This document shows positions 520 to 26,960 of a stretch of DNA of 64,000 nucleotides, in pieces. A program made the position numbers and the translations under genes. Numbering within the stretch: the first letter of the stretch is position 1; each line of letters starts with the position of its first letter. This DNA is from Oculina patagonica (taxonomy: Eukaryota): positions 13,268,001-13,332,000 of the forward strand of contig NC_135758.1 of the NCBI RefSeq assembly GCF_052425735.1, in the 5' to 3' direction. The notes beneath the pieces were generated by a model. That model did no database searches. It saw nothing but the letters and a program-made list of their open reading frames with translations, and was not told where the DNA came from.

Positions 520-2103
520 TTCCATAAGGAGCTCATCAGCTAGGTAAAACATAATAATCTACCACGAGCTCAATATGCTGCCCTCAGATAACATGAATTC
601 CGTAAGGAACTCACCACCTTAGTTACATATAATAACCTAGCACGAGGTCAATATGCTGCCCTCAGATAAAATGAGTTCCATAAGGAACTCACCACCCGAA
701 TAAGACGTAATAATGTGGCACAAGGTTGATATACTTCCCTCAGATAACATGAATTCCATGGGGATCTCACCACCCAAGTAAGACATTGTAATTTAGCACG
801 AGGTCAATATGCTGCCCTCAAATAAAATGAGTTTCATAAGGAATTCACCACTCAAGTAACACATAAATAATGTGGCACGAGGTCAATGTACTGCTTTCAG
901 ACAACACGAGTTCCATAAAACCCACGATCTAAGTTAAACATAATAATGTAGAACGAGGTTAATATGCTGTCACCTCAGATAAAATTAGTTCCATAACTAA
1001 CAAACTCACAACCCAAGTAATTCATAATAATCTAACACAAGGTCAATATGCTGCCTTCAGATAACATGAGGTCCATAAGGAACTACCACCCAAGTAAGAC
1101 ATAATAATGTGGCACGAGGTCAATATGCTGCGTTTGGATAACATGAGTTCCATAGGGAACTCACCACCCGAATAAGACGTAATAATGTGGCACAAGGTTT
1201 ATATACTTCCCTCAGATAACATGATTTCCATGGGGATCTCACCAACCAAGTAAGACATTGTAATTTAGCACGAGGTCAATATGCTGCCCTCAAATAAAAT
1301 GAGTTTCATAAGGAATTCACCACCCAAGTAACACATAAATAATGTGGCACGAGGTCAATATACTGCTTTCAGACAACACGAGTTCCATAAAACCCACGAT
1401 CTAAGTTAAACATAATAATGTAGAACGAGGTTAATATGCTGTCCTCAGATAAAATGAGTTCCATAACTAACAAACTCACAACCCAAGTAATTCATAATAA
1501 TCTAACACAAGGTCAATATGCTGCCTTCAGATAACATGAGGTCCATAAGGAACTACCACCCAAATAAGACATAATAATGTGGCACGAGGTCAATATGCTG
1601 CGTTTGGATAACATGAGGTCCATAAGGAACTCGCCACCCAAGTAAGACATAATAATCTACCACGATGTCAAAATGCTGCCCTCAGATAACATGAGGTCCA
1701 TAAGGAACTCACCACCCAAATAAGACGTAATAATGTGGCACGAGGTCAATATGCTGCCCTCGGATAAAATCAGTTCTATAAGGAACTCAGCATTCAAGTA
1801 AGACATTATAATCTAGCATTATAACTCATCACCCAAGTAAGACATCTAGAACGAGGTCAATATGCTGCCTTTGGATAACATGAGTTCCATAAGGAACTCA
1901 CCACCCAAATAAGACATAATAATGTGGCACGAGGTTAATATGCTGCCCTCAGAGTTCCATAACTAACGAACTAACAACCCAAGTAATTCATAATAATCTA
2001 GCACGAGGTCAATATACTGCCCTCAGATAACATGAATTCCATGAGGAACTCACCACCCAAGTAAGACATTGTAATCTAGAACGAGGTCAATCTGCTGCGT
2101 TTG
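520..2103 (+). repeat. 78-bp satellite array (left part) with ~472-bp hexameric higher-order repeat
   Basis: Unit approx. GAGTTCCATAAGGAACTCACCACCCAAGTAAGACATAATAATCTAGCACGAGGTCAATATGCTGCCCTCAGATAACAT. Diagnostic variants recur at ~472-bp spacing, e.g. cccacgatctaagttaaac at ~921 and ~1393. Confidence 0.95.
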
Positions 2104-2163
2104 GACAAGGCGGAAAAACCACTGAGCATGCGCGTGCAAAATCCCGCCAATTTCGAATTAAAA

Positions 2164-5100
2164 ATGGCGGACGGTGCAGGGCGACAAATAGCATTTTGCC
2201 ACGTATTTAGGAACCAGTTACGGCTGCTTACATGAGTTTGAGACTGCGGCTTCTCACTGCATTTCAAAGTTCGATCACTTGACTTTCGGGTGGCCATTTT
2301 TGACGGCAATTGAACTAAGTTTTCCTAAAAGTTTTGGCATTTGTTCTATGGACTGAAGCGACAGCTGTACATGACAACAGGAGCCCAATCGACCGTGGTT
2401 TTTCCCGTTTGTTAAGGTGTTACGTGAATTGTTAAGGTCAGGAACTCCGTGGACGAAAGTTTGGACATTTTCAAAGAACATATCAAATATGACTTTTTTT
2501 TCGTTGCAATGACTTTTTTTAAACGCCCTTGAAAGATGGAAATCCAAATACGGGCGAAGGAGTCTGCATTGGCGTTTGTCTTCATCGCCTCACTCCCTTT
2601 CGATGAGCAGTTTAGCGAACGGTAAGCAGTTCATCTTGTTTATCGTGATGGCTGTTGTTTGTGTTATCGATTTTCTCATTGTTGTAAATAGCTCGTTTCC
2701 TAAAAGCGCTTTCTTAACTAGTATACTGTATTTAGAATTAATTTGTATGAATAAACATTTGTGAGTTCAAGTTATTTCTTGTCGTTGTTCTTGTATTCGT
2801 CGACACGGCCATTTTGTGCCGGTTTCCCTCACGATTTTCCCGCCTTTTTGCCGTGTAGCCGCTAATGTCAATATCAATTTAGCCGGTCTTCGGCTAAACT
2901 GCAACACAAACGCAAGATTTTTATGTTTACATCGCTTAAAATATGTTCTGTGTGAAGGCTCCTAGAGCTTTGAGCAATAAAGAAAATCTCGTAACAAGGC
3001 CCGAAAATATTTATTGTTGGGGGGAAATTTCCTGTGTGGCTAAAACTGAGTATTTAAACTACGGGTTTCAAGAAAGTGTGTACCTCTGTGTACGACATCA
3101 CGAAGAGCTAAGACAGAAAAATCGATATGTTCCCCCGACGACAAGTGAAAGTGGAAGACTCACCACTTGCCCACAGCGTTTTGTTTCAGTGTTTGAGGAC
3201 TTAGCTGGTCGGTAAATTGTCAGGCCGAAATATTTGTCAAACACATTTAACTCAGGCTGACATCGACACTCGCATACCTTGAAACAAACTATATTTCTCC
3301 CAGAAAGGCGAGTCCGCTTTTGTGTATAATTCATTTAAATTTCGTTCTTTTTTCTACAAGAGGGCAAAAGTCGAGAAAATATTTTTTTGTAATAAAAAGT
3401 GAAAGTGAAAGCAAAGACACCCGAACAGTGAAGGTTTCACCGAAAGATCCCCCTACCTGGAGTGAACTGCTTAAACACATCGAGAGTCTGGAGCGTGAAA
3501 ATGTAAACTTAAAGATCAAATGCAAGACTGAAGAGGAAAGGTCAAAACAGTTGTGTATTGCCGGAAAATTCAAACCTGAATGACCGCTTTAAAGGTGTGT
3601 GGAATTTAAATGGCTTTTATTTTTAAATGGGTTTCCCAATGAAATGGTATTCCAAGCATCTTTTTCAAGATGTTGCTTCAGTAGTTACCCAGATTAAAAA
3701 AATATTTTAGCTTAATAAATAGAAACACCATTTTAAACTGCAGTTGTTTAATTCAGATGTAACCTTACACTTCACTTGAAAAGAATGAATGAGAACCCCG
3801 TGACTGGTACCACAAATGGAAATACTACAAGTTATAATTATTTTTATTATCGCTAATGTTATTACTATAAATAGGTTTCCGAAGACAAGATATTTAGTAA
3901 GGATTGCAATAACATTTGCAGATACTGAACAGAAAAACAAGGAGCTTGAAGAAGAAAATGCCCAGCAACAAAAACATATCGATGAGGTCAAAGCTGAGAA
4001 TAACACTCTTTTATAGAGAAACGGAGGTATATGCTTACTAATAATTCTAAATGGCAGATATTGAAGAGCATAACTTAACATCAAGCAAGGAAAATAGATG
4101 CAATAATTGAATTTAGTCAAATCAAGACGTCTATTTATAAAATTTTAATTCAGTTATTTTCTCATGAGTAAAGGCACATCAGTAAATATAATAAAAAAAA
4201 CATCATGTGCACTATCCTGCTTGGGTTTTTTTAAAAAAAATACTGTGTATAAAATTCAACCAAACAAGTAAAAGCAGCATCTAACAAATGATATAGAACG
4301 AAGTCCACAAGTTCAAGGAATTTATAACACCCCTATGACAGAATGTAAATAAGGTCGAAAATTATTTTTAGGTGAATCAACATTCAGCAAGTTGGTTAAC
4401 TAATTACACAAAGTACTAGCACATCATTACACAATGGGTGGAGCACATCTGTACGACCCCACTGATATGGAGCAGTTTTGTAACAATCACGCTCCTGGTT
4501 TATTCAAACAAGTATACACAGCAATACTTAATGACTCCAAGGAGGTACCTTCTATAAAAAGGATGGAGCTGCAAAAAGTTAGGACCCTTGCTATACTTCA
4601 CAATCTTTGTTTTTTCGCAATCAGGTATTTTCCTTGAAATATATAATTACAAAATAGATGTATTTTATTACTGGTATACTGACTGCAACTATACTTACAA
4701 GTACTATTTAACCTTCCTCACGTTTTTCTTTTTTAACTCGTACAAATACATGCAGCACACACTAGTGTAAAAGCTCTACCCACCAATATGGACTGGAAAA
4801 GAAATGAGCTCACTGGGGACTAGTTGAGCTTTCAACAGTATTACTTAACTGGTACTGTTTAAAAGTTCCCCTTGACAACACAATACTTTTCTTTTCAGTT
4901 AGACTCTTTACACCCTCAAGACTTTTGCTCTTGCTTGAAATTGACTAGGTTTAAATTGAAAGAAAGTTTTGACAGGGTCAGGTTATACCAGGTTAAGCAC
5001 TCAGGAAGGGAACTTCCTCATAAGACATACAATAGAAATATACTAAGACACAAAGCTTCTTTTTAGAAAATTTGTCCTATGCAAAAGGCAAATGGCCTGA

Positions 5101-7305
5101 ATCTTAAAATGTCTGGTGCCAGTTACAATTCACTGATGTCAGGGATGGTCCTCGGATATAGTTGCCATCCGAAAACTCTTCGGAACTATGGAAAAGCATT
5201 AGCAGAGGCTAACAAGAAGGAGGTCAAGAAGAGAATCATGGAAGCTATGGCAGTAGGAATAATATTTTTTTCTTACATTGCACATGTCATTTTTTCATTT
5301 TTTTAGTTTTACTTTCTTCGAAAAAGTTATTAAGTCAAAAATTAATGATACAAAGTAAAGACAACATTTATGTCAAATGTTAGTGAAAAAATTGAAATAA
5401 CATAAGTGGCAGCCAATTTTTTATTTAGCAGTGGTGATAAAAGATGTACATGTAAAGGTCTCAGAATAGTGACACCTGAAAAAAATCATAGCCCAGTACT
5501 TACTAACATTCTGGTTGAGTGAAAGATACATGTACATGTAATTAGCTAACAGACATTAAGTATCATACAGCTGGCCATGGTATTCTACATGTACAATGTA
5601 CATGTACAAAGCAAGTTTTTGATGTTTCAACCCTAAGAATTTAAATTGTTTTCCTTCGCCCTTGACCTAGCATCATTACAATCATGGTACATGTACTTTT
5701 ACTCAATTGGGTTAACCATACTAAAGTGCTACACGTGTATGTTAGATACAAGTGTTCCGATCCTTTTCAGAAGAAGCAGTTCTTGCTCTTAATTGAAGAC
5801 GACATCTACTTTATTCACACATGTCATCATCCTACAACAGCCACCACAAGCACTGCCTGGCACATGTGCACAGGGTTGTTAGATGTGCAGGAGAAAATAC
5901 CAGCTGTATCCTTGCCACCTGACATCAACAAGCTCCATCCGACAGTCCCAGTGACTATGAAAAATGGTGTTGTCAAGCAGTGCAGACGAGGAATAGACGT
6001 GAAATCAATTCTGGAAAAATTTTCTTCCACCCTTCATGACTACTTTGTGTCAAGCTACCTGAGCACCTTGTAAATAGAGCACAGAAGATTGGACTTGACC
6101 AATGTGAAGCAAAGCTGTGAAAATCTAAGGTTAAAAGGGAAAAAAAATTAGTTGTGTTCTCTATAGCAAAGCACTACTGCATTAGGTGCTGGACAAGATA
6201 CTATGCCCCTTGGACTTGATACTCAGCACCTGAATAGCAACCAAGTGTTGCTTAATACATTTAATTAAAATGATCTAGTCCAGCTATGAGTATAAATGAT
6301 AAAACTTTGCTCACTTTTTGTAATTATTCTGACTGGTCTTAAAAACCATGTCTAAATGAATTTATAGTCCTTTAAAACTTTGCTCACTTTTTGTAATTAT
6401 TCTGACTGGTCTTAAAAACCATGTCTAAATGAATTTATAGTCCTTTATTGGGCAATAAAAATGATAAAAATAATTGCCACATGTTCTAAACATTAAATTG
6501 CTGCAACCCTTGACATAACCTCCAACGATATTCCCTTGCATGAAAGTTAAAAAGCAGGGCTAGAGAATAGTACATACATTTTTTTAGTGATACATGTAGG
6601 TCCCCAAGGAGGCATTCACAAACTGTGATTTAAAATTGAATGAAATCCATTATTATTCTGATCTTGTTTCCACTTCTGAATGATTTTAAAGAATCAGATG
6701 AAGCCAGACATGAGTTAGAGCTGCTAAGCACAACTTGGTTAATAGATGAATTCGAACAAAATCTAAAAGGTGTGGCCAATTATCGCACTATGAATCACCT
6801 ACTTGAAGCAAAACCTTGTGGTGCTAACAGGAGACTTCCCAACTTGGAAATATAACAAAAGATTATTGCAGAGGTTTGTTGTATTTACAATGAACATGCA
6901 AAACCCTCAGAAATTACACTCCTAAGTCTTTTAATTTCTAATAGAAAAAGTTAAATCAGTTCGATTCCGAAGTTAAATTAGAATTAAAATCGCACTTAAA
7001 AAGGTAATCATTATTTACTGTAGGTATACTGACCTTTTTCACTGACTAGGTATCTTGTATCCAATCGTTTTATAGGTATCTGGCATGAGAAGACGATGAA
7101 ATCGACGCCACTGACGAAGACGATGGAAACGACAACGATTCCGATCCTGATTAAACTGATGAAAACAACGACTCAAAATTTGATGTGCAGTTCTTCAAAG
7201 AGCAAGTTTCGAAGATCCAGCAGAAAGCTGTCACCCGGTTCCAGGAATTACCCCATCGTGACTATCGGTTACTCAACAGATATGAGAAAACCACGTCGTA
7301 AAATT
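2164..7305 (+). pseudogene. Decayed multi-exon transposase-like gene inside the TIR element
   Basis: Plus-strand exon-like fragments separated by AT-rich intron-like DNA: Cys/His-containing 2943-3290, coiled-coil-like 3400-4016, 4380-4624 (..AILHNLCFF..|gt), ~5067-5250, ~5770-6129 (LLIEDDIYFIHTCHHPTTATTSTAWHMCTG), ~6690-6873 (WLIDEFEQNLKG..LTGDFPTWKY after a frameshift), acidic tail ~7076-7300. In-frame stops and frameshifts throughout. Confidence 0.65.
6301..6446. repeat. Exact 73-bp tandem duplication
   Basis: aaaactttgctcac...tttatagtccttt occurs at 6301 and again at 6374. Confidence 0.9.
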
Positions 7306-7647
7306 GAGGTGAAAGCCGTGCACTGGAAGCTGCATTGGTACCGTTCGTTGTCTTGTCTGAAAATCGTGTGGAACTCCAACGAACGAAAACCAAAAACGGC
7401 TTCTTTAGAAGCCACTCAATATGCAAAAGTCAATGACAAATAAATAATAATCTTTCCCATAAAGTAAATCGAAAGAGCTTTGAAAGATCAGTAAGGAACC
7501 GACACCTTTTCGACTCACACGAACGAACCTCATGGTTATCCGCCATCTTGAATATCAAAATTTGAAAAATACGCGCAAGCGCATTAGCGTCGAGCGGGCA
7601 ATGTTACGTCATTTCGCTCAGCCAATCAGCGGTTTTTCCGCCTTGTC

Positions 7648-8465
7648 CTGCGTTTGGATAACATGAGTTCCATAGGGAGCTCACCACCCGAGTAAGACAT
7701 AATAATGTGGCACAAGGTTAATATACTGCCCTCAGATAACATGAATTCAATGAGGATCTCACCACCCAAGTAAGACATTGTAATCTAGAACGAGGTCAAT
7801 CTGCTGCGTTTGGATAACATGAGTTCCATAGGGAACTCACCACCCAAGTAAGACATAATAATGTGGCACAAGGTTAATATACTGCCCTCAGATAACATGA
7901 ATTCAATGAGGATCTCACCACCCAAGTAAGACATTGAAATCTAGAACGAGGTCAATATGCTGCGTTTGGATAACATGAGTTCCATAAGGAACTCACTAAC
8001 CAAATAAGACATAATAATGTGGCACAAGGTCAATATGCTGCCCTCGGATAAAATACGTTCCATTAGGAACTCCGCACCCAAGTAAGACATTATAATCTAG
8101 CACGAAGTCAATAGGCTGCCCTCAGATGAAATGAGGAACTCACCACCCAAGTAACACATAATAATGTGGCACGAGGTCAATATACTGCTTTCAGATAACA
8201 TGAGTTCCATAAAGCCCACGACCTAAGTTAGACATAATAATGTAGCACGAGGTTAATATGCTGTCCTCAGATAAAATGAGTTCCATAACTAACAAACTCA
8301 CAACCCAAGTAATTCATAATAATCTAACACAAGGTTAATATGCTGCCCTCAGATAACATGAGTTCCTTAAGGAACTCGCAACCCAAGTAAGACATAATAA
8401 TGTGGCACAAGGTCAATATACTGCCCTCAGATAAGATGAATTCAATGAGGATCTCACCACCCAAG
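7648..8465 (+). repeat. 78-bp satellite array (continuation after the transposon)
   Basis: Same unit and same higher-order variants as 520-2103; resumes in register at the TSD. Confidence 0.95.
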
Positions 8466-24599: not shown

Positions 24600-26960
24600 A
24601 AGAAATACAATGCTAGAGAAAAATGTCATCCGCAAAATTTTTCTTGTTTTGCTTAGGAGGGCCACAGGTTTGTCATTTTCATCTACCCATTTAACTGTCA
24701 TGTCTCATGTCACCCGCATTAAATAAAGCTTATCACTTGACTTTGTCTATGTTTTGATAATAAATACGGCTTTGTCTGGTTGCACGTGATGTGTCAGGTC
24801 AATAAGGTCGTTGAAATTTTGCCAAAACGTGTTAGACCTTCAGGCTTCATCACGAACACCAAACACTTTATAATCAATATATCCACTTATAAATGTTGTC
24901 TGAGACAAAATAACGACATCTCACTTTCTCTTGCTCAATTATACTTCCCCACAGTAAAAACTAATCACGACCTATAACAATGACAAAAATATCTCTATCT
25001 GATAATTTTGATTTTTGATTATTATGTCAGGCATCATCTGTTACTAAACGTGCAGTGGTGGACTGTCTCGTGTTTTGACGTGCACGTGCAACAAGCTGCA
25101 CGCACATTAAAACACGTGAACACCCAAACTCTTTCCCATGGCCTAAAGTCCTTTTTGCCCCTTAATAGAAAGGACCCTGGGAGCGAAGGACACCGCGGCA
25201 AAACGCACTGCGCAGAGTGGAAAATTAACATCCGGTCAGTTTTGTATTTCCGGTTGACTAGTAATCCAGTCGCGTAAATACAAAATTCCCGTCGCGCGAA
25301 TTTAAACACAAAACTTAAGAAATAGCAAAGAAACTTAAGGAAAATAATGTCTAATTCAAAAGTTTTTTTTTTTGTAGCTTCAACTTTTGCACCATAGGGT
25401 TTCCTGCTTGCACCAGCAGAAAATGATGCTGAATTTACAGGTCGCAAGCGCCGACAGTCGACAGCGGCAATTCGTTGACTGTGTCTATCACTTTGCCCGC
25501 TTTAATTCTCGCAATTAGGGGCGACAAATGAGAAAGAAAACAACATAAAACCAAAATAAAGAACCACTGAACTTTCAAGTTTAGGCTTTCGATAATTCTT
25601 GCCTTCACTGAGAAAAAAGTCAAAAACAAGAAAGAAAACAAATTGCTCATGTTGCTTGTTCAACATGAATGAATTGAGTCTTCGATACTCCCGGACTACC
25701 TGGAGTTTTTGTGGATTGAAAGCTGTTAGCCGAGAAGCTAAACAAGTTTAAATTGTGTTTCCATTCAAGACAAAGGCAATTTGATTTTCTTAATCCTCCT
25801 CACAAGGTCAAATATTCGTCTATTTGGCGGATGTTTTCCACATTTCCAGTCCGTGTGGCTACCTCACGCGCGAACGAAACTTGCAGATTCGCACAGGCGT
25901 TCATTACCAAACTTTCAACTATCGTACCGGTTATCTCTCCTCAATCTAAAAGGAAAAAGATCAAAGTTAGTTTAAAATTTAAACAAAAAGTACGGACCTA
26001 TACGGGTGTTTTTAAAATTAAAACGAAGGATGTGTGTATTTTTTAGGGAAGTGTTAGGTTAAATAAAGTAGAATAAAAATAAAGTAAAAAATAACAAATG
26101 CAACAATACTGGATAGGAAAGTATGAATTAGTCAAGGTTAATAGATAAGAAATGGAAGTAAAATTCCTTCTGTTTGTTGATAATAAGTTTTTAAGCTCAT
26201 CTGCTGCTCAAATAGATCAAAGCCTTAGCGATTAGCGAATCACGATACTTTTAAATTATCGAGTATTTTTCGTATATTTAGTTTGTATCATGAAGAGATT
26301 AAAAACGATTAAAAAGCAAAATAAGTGGGCACGAGAGCCGAAAGAGATATATTTTGCGAGAGTAGATTTATTTTAAAGTATTTACGTGTGGTATGATAGT
26401 TGGGGGTGTGTGGAACATTTAGTGATAGAAAAATGTGCGTGCCGCAAGATTTGGAGATGTTCACAGAAGAGGTAAGAGTGGAAAGAGGTGTACAGAGGTT
26501 TTTTAAATGTGTATGGAGGGGGTATGTGGACGGAGAGAAGATATAGAAGGAAGAGTGAGATGATTAAAAGGTCGATTTATGAAGGGGCAATGGAGGAGGC
26601 GTAAGAATGTTGGAAGTTTAAGGGTGTGAAAGTATTAGGGATTAGAGGGTGTATTTTTTTTTGGAATGTTAGTTTGTAGTTTTTTTTTTAAGGGTTTAGT
26701 TAGTTAATAGTTGTAAAGAACATAGTAGTGAAAAATTTTCGTGTATAATAAAAGTTTTATTATTATTATTTTATTATTATTAAAGCGTAGCGAGTGAAGC
26801 CCGTTGAGTGACTGGAAAGATGACCGGAAGTGTAAATTCAGCGATGCGTAGACGTTCTGCCGCGGTGTCGGAGGAAGTTGGTTCATTCAATCCCGGGGAT
26901 AATTTCCACCGTTCTCTTTGACAAGCAAGTGTAGGAGGCAATGTTTTTTAATTCGGATTT
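24600..26960 (-). repeat. Inverted copy of segment A, split by a 1.68-kb insertion
   Basis: Matches the reverse complement of 10780-11470 on both sides of 25189-26869. Confidence 0.85.
25189..26869. mobile_element. 1.68-kb non-autonomous TIR element with ~9-bp TSD, ends related to the 2104-7647 element
   Basis: Left end GACACCGCGGCAAAACG; right end CGTTCTGCCGCGGTGTC. Flanks are ggagcgaag (25180-25188) and ggag-gaag (26870-26877). The empty site is visible in segment A at ~10860-10880. Confidence 0.85.

Follow-up and report, generated by a model that had tools for sequence, protein, structure and literature searches.

INTRODUCTION

Several described eukaryotic families bear on the element reported here. 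The nearest, DUF6589 (PF20231), is an uncharacterised eukaryotic protein family with almost no literature (one paper and one mention). Among solved structures, the closest counterparts are the transposases of the Drosophila P element and of the hAT element Hermes; P elements make target site duplications (TSDs) of 7 to 8 bp and typically give rise to internally deleted, non-autonomous derivatives. A 9-bp duplication is made by FB-NOF. Mutator-like elements (MULEs), Rehavkus among them, share with our family a 9-bp duplication, G-initial ends and, in some groups, a zinc finger after the core (PMC6446971); our family differs in its core, which is about twice as long, in its motifs and in its short terminal inverted repeats (TIRs). 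We compared these systems with a locus in a 64,000-bp stretch of the Oculina patagonica genome (NC_135758.1, positions 13,268,001 to 13,332,000, forward strand; hereafter the window), where positions 2104-7647 hold a transposon carrying the remains of a gene. We are confident that this is a non-autonomous, internally deleted and decayed cut-and-paste DDE transposon, belonging to a large group that is unnamed in our searches.

RESULTS

Ends and target site

The element lies in an array of 78-bp satellite units (520-8465). Uninterrupted units a few hundred bases away (e.g., 7793-7820 and 7960-7980) read ...CTGCTGCGTTTGGATAACATG... and contain the 9-mer CTGCGTTTG once each, so that the empty, pre-insertion site can be read directly. 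At the locus, this 9-mer stands on either side of 5,544 bp bounded by TIRs, with the following features in window positions.

2095-2103, unstranded: left TSD copy CTGCGTTTG, identical to the 9-mer at 7648-7656 and single in each intact satellite unit
2104-2125, + strand: left (5') TIR GACAAGGCGGAAAAACCACTGA, followed by GCATGCGC; complementary to 7626-7647 at 21 of 22 positions, with the end motif common to related families
7626-7647, - strand: right (3') TIR GACAAGGCGGAAAAACCGCTGA, preceded by CCAATCAG (CTGATTGG on the other strand)
7648-7656, unstranded: right TSD copy CTGCGTTTG

A first-pass annotation, made from the letters of the sequence, had proposed 22-bp TIRs starting with GAC and a 9-bp TSD, with ends verifiable against the satellite. 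Both points are borne out: the left TIR and the reverse complement of the right TIR agree at 21 of 22 positions, with one mismatch (the inverted-repeat tool gives 23 nt at 96%, one flanking base being counted in), and the 9-mer is single in intact units. The element is not enriched in TIR-like cores, of which it has 8 compared with 63 in the whole window.

Adjoining the TIRs, GCATGCGC at 2126-2135, upstream of the gene, resembles an NRF1 site, and CCAATCAG at 7616-7625, downstream, holds a CCAAT box. These asymmetric subterminal motifs are kept between families (L064:5293-5324 and L060:7299-7330) whose exons are ~50-60% identical in protein, and could be promoter or transposase-binding elements.

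Other copies and their decay

A DNA search of the whole 529-Mb assembly found two more full-length copies in O. patagonica, each with its own 9-bp TSD. One, at C1:27647394-27652900, has GGTTGGTAA on either side; the other, at C4:6291673-6300347, has the TSD GCGACGGAG and has received three later nested insertions. Since flanks differ among the three full copies, they are not segmental duplicates. Several fragments and short derivatives are also present in the assembly. With the two related families described below, the tabulation of TSD length that the first-pass annotation had proposed gives 9 bp in 5 of 5 clean insertions (3 copies and 2 related families).

The copies have decayed. Copies A and B are separated by 168 substitutions (~3%) and 30 indels, many of them in exons, and the window copy has three in-frame stops (TAG at 4014-4016, TAA at 6071-6073 and TAA at 7152-7154) and frameshifts at ~3560-3583 and ~6800. 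Judged by their reading frames, all three copies are now pseudogenes, non-autonomous fossils.

The gene remnant

Exons were searched singly. The two reference proteins are P0081 (O. patagonica LOC144658110, 973 amino acids [aa]), for which an exact-sequence look-up returned no record, and P0233 from Porites lobata, the closest available protein, with 39-64% identity per exon. The gene features, again in window positions, are as follows.

2943-3213, + strand: exon for an N-terminal Cys/His-rich domain, presumed DNA-binding; open frame
3402-3593, + strand: coiled-coil exon with a putative start and a frame broken at ~3560-3583; weak leucine-zipper-type Pfam matches
3922-4027, + strand: second coiled-coil exon, recognized from sequence and frames, with an in-frame TAG at 4014-4016
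4371-4624, + strand: helical pre-core exon corresponding by tblastn to P0081 residues 13-67 and P0233 residues 179-261, with relatives elsewhere in the genome
5067-5252, + strand: exon corresponding by tblastn to P0081 residues 71-141, with an AG acceptor at 5065-5066 and a GT donor at 5253
5771-6129, + strand: exon with the first putative catalytic Asp pair (LLIEDD), placed by tblastn and by motif columns, with an in-frame TAA at 6071-6073
6300-6447, unstranded: 73-bp tandem duplication in an intron, two exact copies, in the window copy only
6692-6872, + strand: exon with the second putative catalytic Asp (LTGDFPTW), matched by tblastn in two frames (P0081 residues 251-319, P0233 residues 446-514)
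6873-7075, + strand: short intron of 203 bp, holding or adjoining the internal deletion
7076-7310, + strand: terminal exon remnant, with an acidic tract at 7089-7151 and then an in-frame TAA at 7152-7154

The window exons match, in order, the first ~320 residues of family proteins ~700-1,150 aa long, of cnidarian and glomeromycete origin. In P0081, residues 13-67 correspond to window 4449-4616, residues 71-141 to 5067-5279, residues 136-249 to 5780-6133, residues 251-281 to 6694-6786 and residues 296-319 to 6797-6868. A canonical splice site stands at the end of every homology block, with donors at 4625, 5253, 6130 and 6873 and acceptors ending at 5066, 5770, 6691 and 7075. Both exon motifs singled out by the first-pass annotation are present. 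The open frame 5771-6070 contains LLIEDD..IH..H.P....STA.HMCT, whose DD codons are at 5798-5803, and the family profile matches window 5750-6112 at E 1.5e-8 (E, expectation value); LTGDFPTW lies at 6824-6847, with its D codon at 6833-6835. The second-Asp exon carries a frameshift in the window copy from a 29-bp loss near 6800, visible as a gap against copy B, and is intact in copy C, where a single high-scoring segment pair covers residues 243-323.

The N-terminal exon (2943-3213) is kept in three related elements (C1/C12, E 7e-12 and 1e-11; C13, E 6e-5) and has no Pfam match. At the corresponding position, the C1/C12 elements weakly match the first coiled-coil exon (E ~0.08), within which copies A and B differ by two indels, of 7 bp and 4 bp. 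The true start of the 4371-4624 exon is uncertain, owing to an in-frame TAA at 4401-4403. Searched in Pfam, nine open frames of the window gave weak coiled-coil noise only, and an ESM Atlas feature search with the first-Asp exon alone gave nothing usable. Neither copy B nor a contig of public run X1 (see below) has the 73-bp duplication, which therefore arose after insertion or is polymorphic.

An internal deletion shared by all copies

Homology to P0081, P0233 and a third relative, P0234, stops at 6868 in the window and resumes only at the acidic tract, which resembles the acidic stretch that follows the RING finger in P0234 and in the proteins of L055 and L056. In all three copies the last matching residue is ~320 in P0081 (514 in P0233), close behind GDWPTW..KK. 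Some 360 codons are missing, comprising the GxxH motif, the helical insertion, the putative catalytic Glu and the RING-H2 finger. The core had been suspected of being deleted before the acidic tail, and the gap from residue ~320 to the acidic stretch, in 3 of 3 copies, agrees with this. As the deletion is common to three copies with different TSDs, the deleted form transposed at least twice and would have been mobilised in trans.

The protein family and its elements

Exon-by-exon protein searches of the genome found graded relatives, up to uninterrupted open frames of 1,059-1,123 codons. One of these, L055:3907-7266 (C12:13.37 Mb), retrieved 84 proteins of ~620-1,190 aa from corals, other cnidarians and glomeromycete fungi (Rhizophagus, Gigaspora and Diversispora), all of them annotated as uncharacterised and none with a Pfam transposase domain. 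The family comprises 2,108 clusters (50% identity, E<=1e-3) among 1.84 billion protein representatives, and by protein similarity the group spans cnidarians, glomeromycete fungi and other eukaryotes. In this genome, the family profile matches 92 stretches, counted exon by exon, so that the number of loci is well below 92. A large share of family fragments, along with DUF6589 matches, falls at ~30-43 Mb of contig C4, which looks like a transposon-rich, possibly pericentromeric region.

From the N terminus onward, intact members have a Cys/His domain, a coiled coil, a core of the RNase H type, a RING-H2 finger and an acidic stretch. The core motifs (I/L)DDYxxIH, GDWPxQ, GxLHxxLN and VENxHSxLR are interrupted by a helical insertion domain. 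Some intact members have, in addition, a C-terminal cysteine-protease-like domain. An end domain with the pattern GSNAC(T)xIA ... (E/D)SHxH is seen in L055:3907-7266, L057, L056 and P0081 (residues ~720-973), and two members weakly match the herpesvirus tegument deubiquitinase family PF04843 (E 5e-4). Taken together, the end-domain pattern and the PF04843 matches point to a transposase bearing both a RING-H2 finger and a deubiquitinase-like cysteine protease.

Relatives of the gene reside in elements with related ends. On C13, a 7,204-bp element has the TIR G(G/A)CACGGCGGAAAAACCGCTGATTGGCTG and the TSD AATCTAGCT; on C1, one of 8,026 bp has a 21-bp perfect TIR, GACAGAGCGCAAAAACGGCTG, and the TSD CGCAGCTTC. 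Both carry same-family genes that run through the RING finger, and these 7.2-kb and 8.0-kb families share with the window element the end motif GACA..GCGGAAAAAC..CTG and the 9-bp duplication. The aligned termini have the consensus GACAnnGCGGAAAAAC(C/G)GCTG, and TIR length is 21-29 bp in four families. In the window and C1 elements, the end upstream of the gene continues ..CATGCGC.. and the downstream end ..ATTGG.. (CCAAT on the other strand). An inverted-repeat search around the intronless 1,120-aa genes (L055, L057 and L056) found no TIRs; their left boundary, taken from a two-copy comparison, is a related terminus, AACAAAGGAG..CTGATTGG.

These elements bear on the question of whether the gene is captured host cargo in an element moved by an unrelated transposase, as the first-pass annotation allowed should the protein lack an RNase H fold. 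Nothing speaks for cargo beyond the gene's unfamiliarity and its lack of Pfam matches. At least three element families with related ends, bounded by TIRs and TSDs, contain homologous genes, the N-terminal domain varies in step with the element family, and the predicted structure of a relative has the fold of a DDE transposase, with an RNase H domain. We find cargo scarcely credible and take the gene to be the remnant of a DDE-type transposase.

Predicted fold and putative catalytic residues

In a 48-sequence alignment (P0081 numbering), D142/D143, D308 and E345 are kept in at least 90% of sequences, and P310, G335, H338, N342, D414, E492, H495, S496 and R499 are invariant. The LLIEDD of the window falls on the D142/D143 columns, and its LTGDFPTW on GDWPxQ, which holds D308. 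AlphaFold modelled P0081 residues 1-700 confidently, with a pLDDT of 87.7, and the core (120-540) with one of 88.1. In the models, the Asp pair lies on strand 1 of a mixed sheet and D308 just after strand 4; GxxH follows strand 5, and after it come ~110 residues of helices, with E492 on the helix after them. The modelled layout is that of an RNase H-type transposase with an insertion domain. The proposal that the two exon motifs are the first two catalytic Asp of an RNase H fold thus agrees with their columns and with the modelled positions of these. Intact relatives have the D, D and E together with the RNase H-like fold, and the window copy keeps the two Asp motifs only.

Structural comparisons placed the core among DDE enzymes. 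By Foldseek, Hermes was the best match and the sole one below E 0.001 (E 7.7e-4); re-alignment with VIA gave Z scores of 11.7 for Hermes, 10.3 for the P element, 8.3 for ISCth4, 6.9 for Transib and 6.8 for RAG1. In a VIA scan independent of Foldseek, with the core alone against 48,161 PDB representatives, the P element came first (6p5a/6pe2; Z 13.8 over 288 residues, root mean square deviation [rmsd] 5.0), followed by Hermes (Z 11.4) and then by retroviral integrases, ISCth4, Tn5, Transib, RAG1 and other DDE enzymes. A PDB sequence search with a 1,120-aa relative found no match. The RNase H-type fold and the structural matches to DDE enzymes together argue that this is a family of DDE transposases.

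The ranking raises the possibility that the family belongs, as a divergent branch, to the P or the hAT superfamily. The top matches, P (Z 13.8) and Hermes (4d1q and 8edg; Z 11.4-11.7 over ~275-300 residues), each cover the RNase H core and the insertion domain, and an Atlas search returned hAT-type clusters at TM scores of 0.47-0.52. With the P element the family shares an RNase H fold in which a large insertion separates the second Asp from the Glu, and an analogous layout of N-terminal DNA-binding domain and coiled coil; for hAT, we infer from the models that the invariant His of GxxH, just after strand 5, has the position of the hAT CxxH motif. Sequence identity in the structural alignments is only 8-9%, however (8% for P, 8-9% for Hermes). 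The hAT dimerisation domain (PF05699) and the Hermes DNA-binding, THAP and P-transposase domains are absent among the Pfam families listed, the insertion of our family is all-helical with no sign of the GTP-binding domain of P, and a RING-H2 finger follows the core. P elements duplicate 7-8 bp rather than the 9 bp found here. In hAT elements the duplication is 8 bp, or 5-7 in variants (PMC12730594), compared with 9 bp in 5 of 5 clean insertions here. Membership in either superfamily is thus very unlikely, and we retain the reading of a distinct DDE family with a P/hAT-like core.

Placement among described families

Pfam was scanned with 66 relatives; for 48 of these, the 25 most frequently matched families were listed, and statements about these scans refer to the families listed. 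No MULE, KDZ (Kyakuja-Dileera-Zisupton), hAT, P, CACTA or DUF6589 model was above threshold. The matches were to RING fingers, along with the two weak herpesvirus deubiquitinase matches and one sub-threshold match to DUF6589 (P0121).

The first-pass annotation leaned toward a MULE- or KDZ-related lineage. A very divergent Mutator (MULE/MuDR) element, Rehavkus or Ghost included, would be filed by Repbase as MuDR, and several observations favor it. MULEs have a basic residue seven positions after the Glu motif, which is paralleled in the Glu motif of our family. The IS256-type transposase ISCth4 is among the structural matches (Z 8.3-8.7), and accessory zinc fingers occur in the form of a PHD finger in Rehavkus and a RING finger in some Ghost elements. 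The 9-bp duplication is typical of MULEs and of Rehavkus (PMC6446971) and falls within the 9-11-bp range of MULE TSDs. On the other side, PF10551 is not listed for any of the 66 relatives, and the P and hAT structures exceed ISCth4 as matches. The first Asp of our family lies ~350 residues from the Glu, in contrast to the ~170-residue DDE domain of a published data set (PMC6446971), whose alignments contain none of DDYHN, GDWP, ADWP, IDDY, ENFHS, KPKPWR and HYNK; Rehavkus has D-x-T-G and NAIERYF-type motifs instead (PMC6446971). The TIRs, at 21-29 bp, also differ from the usual, if not universal, long TIRs of MULEs, often 100 bp or more. We regard a MULE affiliation as unlikely.

KDZ transposases are likewise large, with zinc-binding modules, and occur in fungi and animals. 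The KDZ transposase (PF18758) and CxC models are not listed for the 66 relatives, however, and KDZ elements duplicate 7-8 bp, as opposed to the 9-bp TSD and GAC..GTC TIRs found here: Zisupton and Dileera have an 8-bp TSD, and Kyakuja has a 7-bp TSD and CA..TG ends without TIRs (PMC12730594). Membership in this group is extremely improbable. The leaning toward MULE or KDZ was therefore not upheld, given the Pfam families listed, the 7-8-bp TSD of KDZ and the precedence of P and hAT structures over ISCth4; the other elements of that interpretation, namely the fold, the motifs and the deletion, were. Structure made P and hAT, which had been proposed for comparison, the best solved matches, and the nearest described family proved to be DUF6589, which had been listed for comparison only.

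By protein-language-model features, DUF6589 is nearest (score 0.96), with 25 of 30 matches in DUF6589 clusters, and the core model, alike in fold and overall architecture, superposes on that of a mollusc cluster with 35% PF20231 members at a TM score of 0.86 over 396 residues (rmsd 2.9). The P0121 match to PF20231 has E 0.0016 and 17.7 bits, compared with a gathering cut-off of 27 bits. Hosts are similar (cnidarians, molluscs and fungi), and DUF6589 has 87 matches in this genome. The two families nonetheless differ: 65 of the 66 relatives have no PF20231 match among the families listed, and the places matched in this genome by PF20231 and by the family profile are disjoint. Word-index searches aimed at DUF6589 proteins, starting from P0121 and from profile A2, reached close relatives alone, none of them bearing a Pfam label. 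The literature on DUF6589, on NOF and MULE-NOF, and on a superfamily combining a 9-bp TSD with a RING finger held nothing decisive. In our reading, the group and DUF6589 are sister lineages among DDE transposases of the P/hAT-like class.

Public sequencing reads

Four public runs were examined, and none contained sense-strand splice joints. Polyadenylated RNA under the same species label gave 34 reads, 0 of them at 99% identity to the window copy, and two reads came from a small-RNA run. Run X4, of cDNA, shows loose ends of template-switch oligo and poly-A, and its pieces extend over much of the element. Runs X4 and X1 both contain a joint of 6124 to 7034, skipping 909 bp that begin with CT and end with AC; on the minus strand, the skipped segment (6125-7033) has GT..AG borders, the donor (AAG|GTCAGT) being a good one and the acceptor rich in pyrimidines. 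The joint points to spliced antisense RNA or, alternatively, to another copy with a further deletion. The X1 joint contig is ~0.8% different from the window copy and has another flank, which indicates that run X1 holds a copy unseen in the assembly. The same run has a 252-nt contig in which 28-bp ends (2104-2131 and 7618-7645) surround 18 unrelated bases, and which is either a miniature derivative or a product of excision or rearrangement.

Derivatives and possible exchange

Other loci show partial relatives of the element. L004 (C4:40008214-40010937) contains its first 1.9 kb at 89% identity, followed by an exon with only 46% protein identity, and it appears that the 5' region was shared or exchanged between two families. 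L007 (C13:27976329-27978135) and L008 (C1:2238988-2240646) are ~1.8-kb derivatives keeping element positions 1-977, 1461-1765 and 1933-2181; a right-end TIR near L007 is in an unexpected orientation, which suggests rearrangement or nesting. Within the window, a 1.7-kb element at 25189-26869 has termini GACACCGCGGCA(A/G)AACG, related to the end motif of the group. It is flanked by a 9-bp duplication that is imperfect (GGAGCGAAG and GGAGGAAGT), and we consider it a probable non-autonomous relative.

DISCUSSION

The ends, duplications, copies and homology of the window element can be accommodated in a simple history. The transposase of a full-length relative would bind the GACA..GCGGAAAAAC termini, excise the element and join it to a target cut with a 9-bp stagger, yielding the 9-bp duplication. 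The progenitor of the 5.5-kb copies would already have been without a region that starts close behind the second Asp and extends past the RING finger, and its descendants, able to move in trans only, would later have gained stops and frameshifts. The deletion derivative retains the putative DNA-binding and coiled-coil part and half of the core, a layout analogous to that of the KP-type repressor of P elements, and may once have been an inhibitor of transposition.

Several considerations weigh against this account. A name for the group was not found in Pfam, PDB and the open literature, to which the term unnamed is confined, and entries for such elements may already exist in Repbase or Dfam, perhaps under MuDR on account of the 9-bp TSD. 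The assignment of catalytic roles to D, D and E draws on conservation and on place in predicted secondary structure. Sense-strand introns rest on homology and splice-site consensus, and one cDNA contig runs unspliced across 4235-5255, spanning the proposed intron 4625-5066; the gene is thus intron-rich, as first described, in its homology blocks ending at splice sites, a description that drew no support from RNA. The DNA search of the whole assembly revealed no undeleted autonomous copy with the same ends.

A broader proposal, which we advance tentatively and hold to be possible rather than probable, is that the element is a fossil of a formally unnamed eukaryotic DDE superfamily, marked by 21-29-bp GACA..GCGGAAAAAC termini, a strict 9-bp TSD and a P/hAT-like core sister to DUF6589. 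Its hallmarks would include the asymmetric subterminal pair, with GCATGCGC on the upstream side of the gene and CCAAT/CTGATTGG on its downstream side. The pairing of a RING-H2 finger with a deubiquitinase-like protease would suggest that the transposase interacts with the ubiquitin system of its host.

Taken by itself, the window copy is an ordinary non-autonomous transposon, now dead, and the interest lies in the poorly described superfamily that it represents; the copy matters because its ends are exactly readable in a satellite with a visible empty site. It and its relatives connect a 9-bp duplication and short, conserved TIRs with a family of 2,108 clusters of "uncharacterized protein" missed by Pfam transposase models, in which a RING-H2 finger and a protease-like tail form an unusual accessory set for a DDE transposase. 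If such elements are absent from Repbase and Dfam, they would constitute a new superfamily next to DUF6589 and a hint that DUF6589 proteins are themselves transposases.

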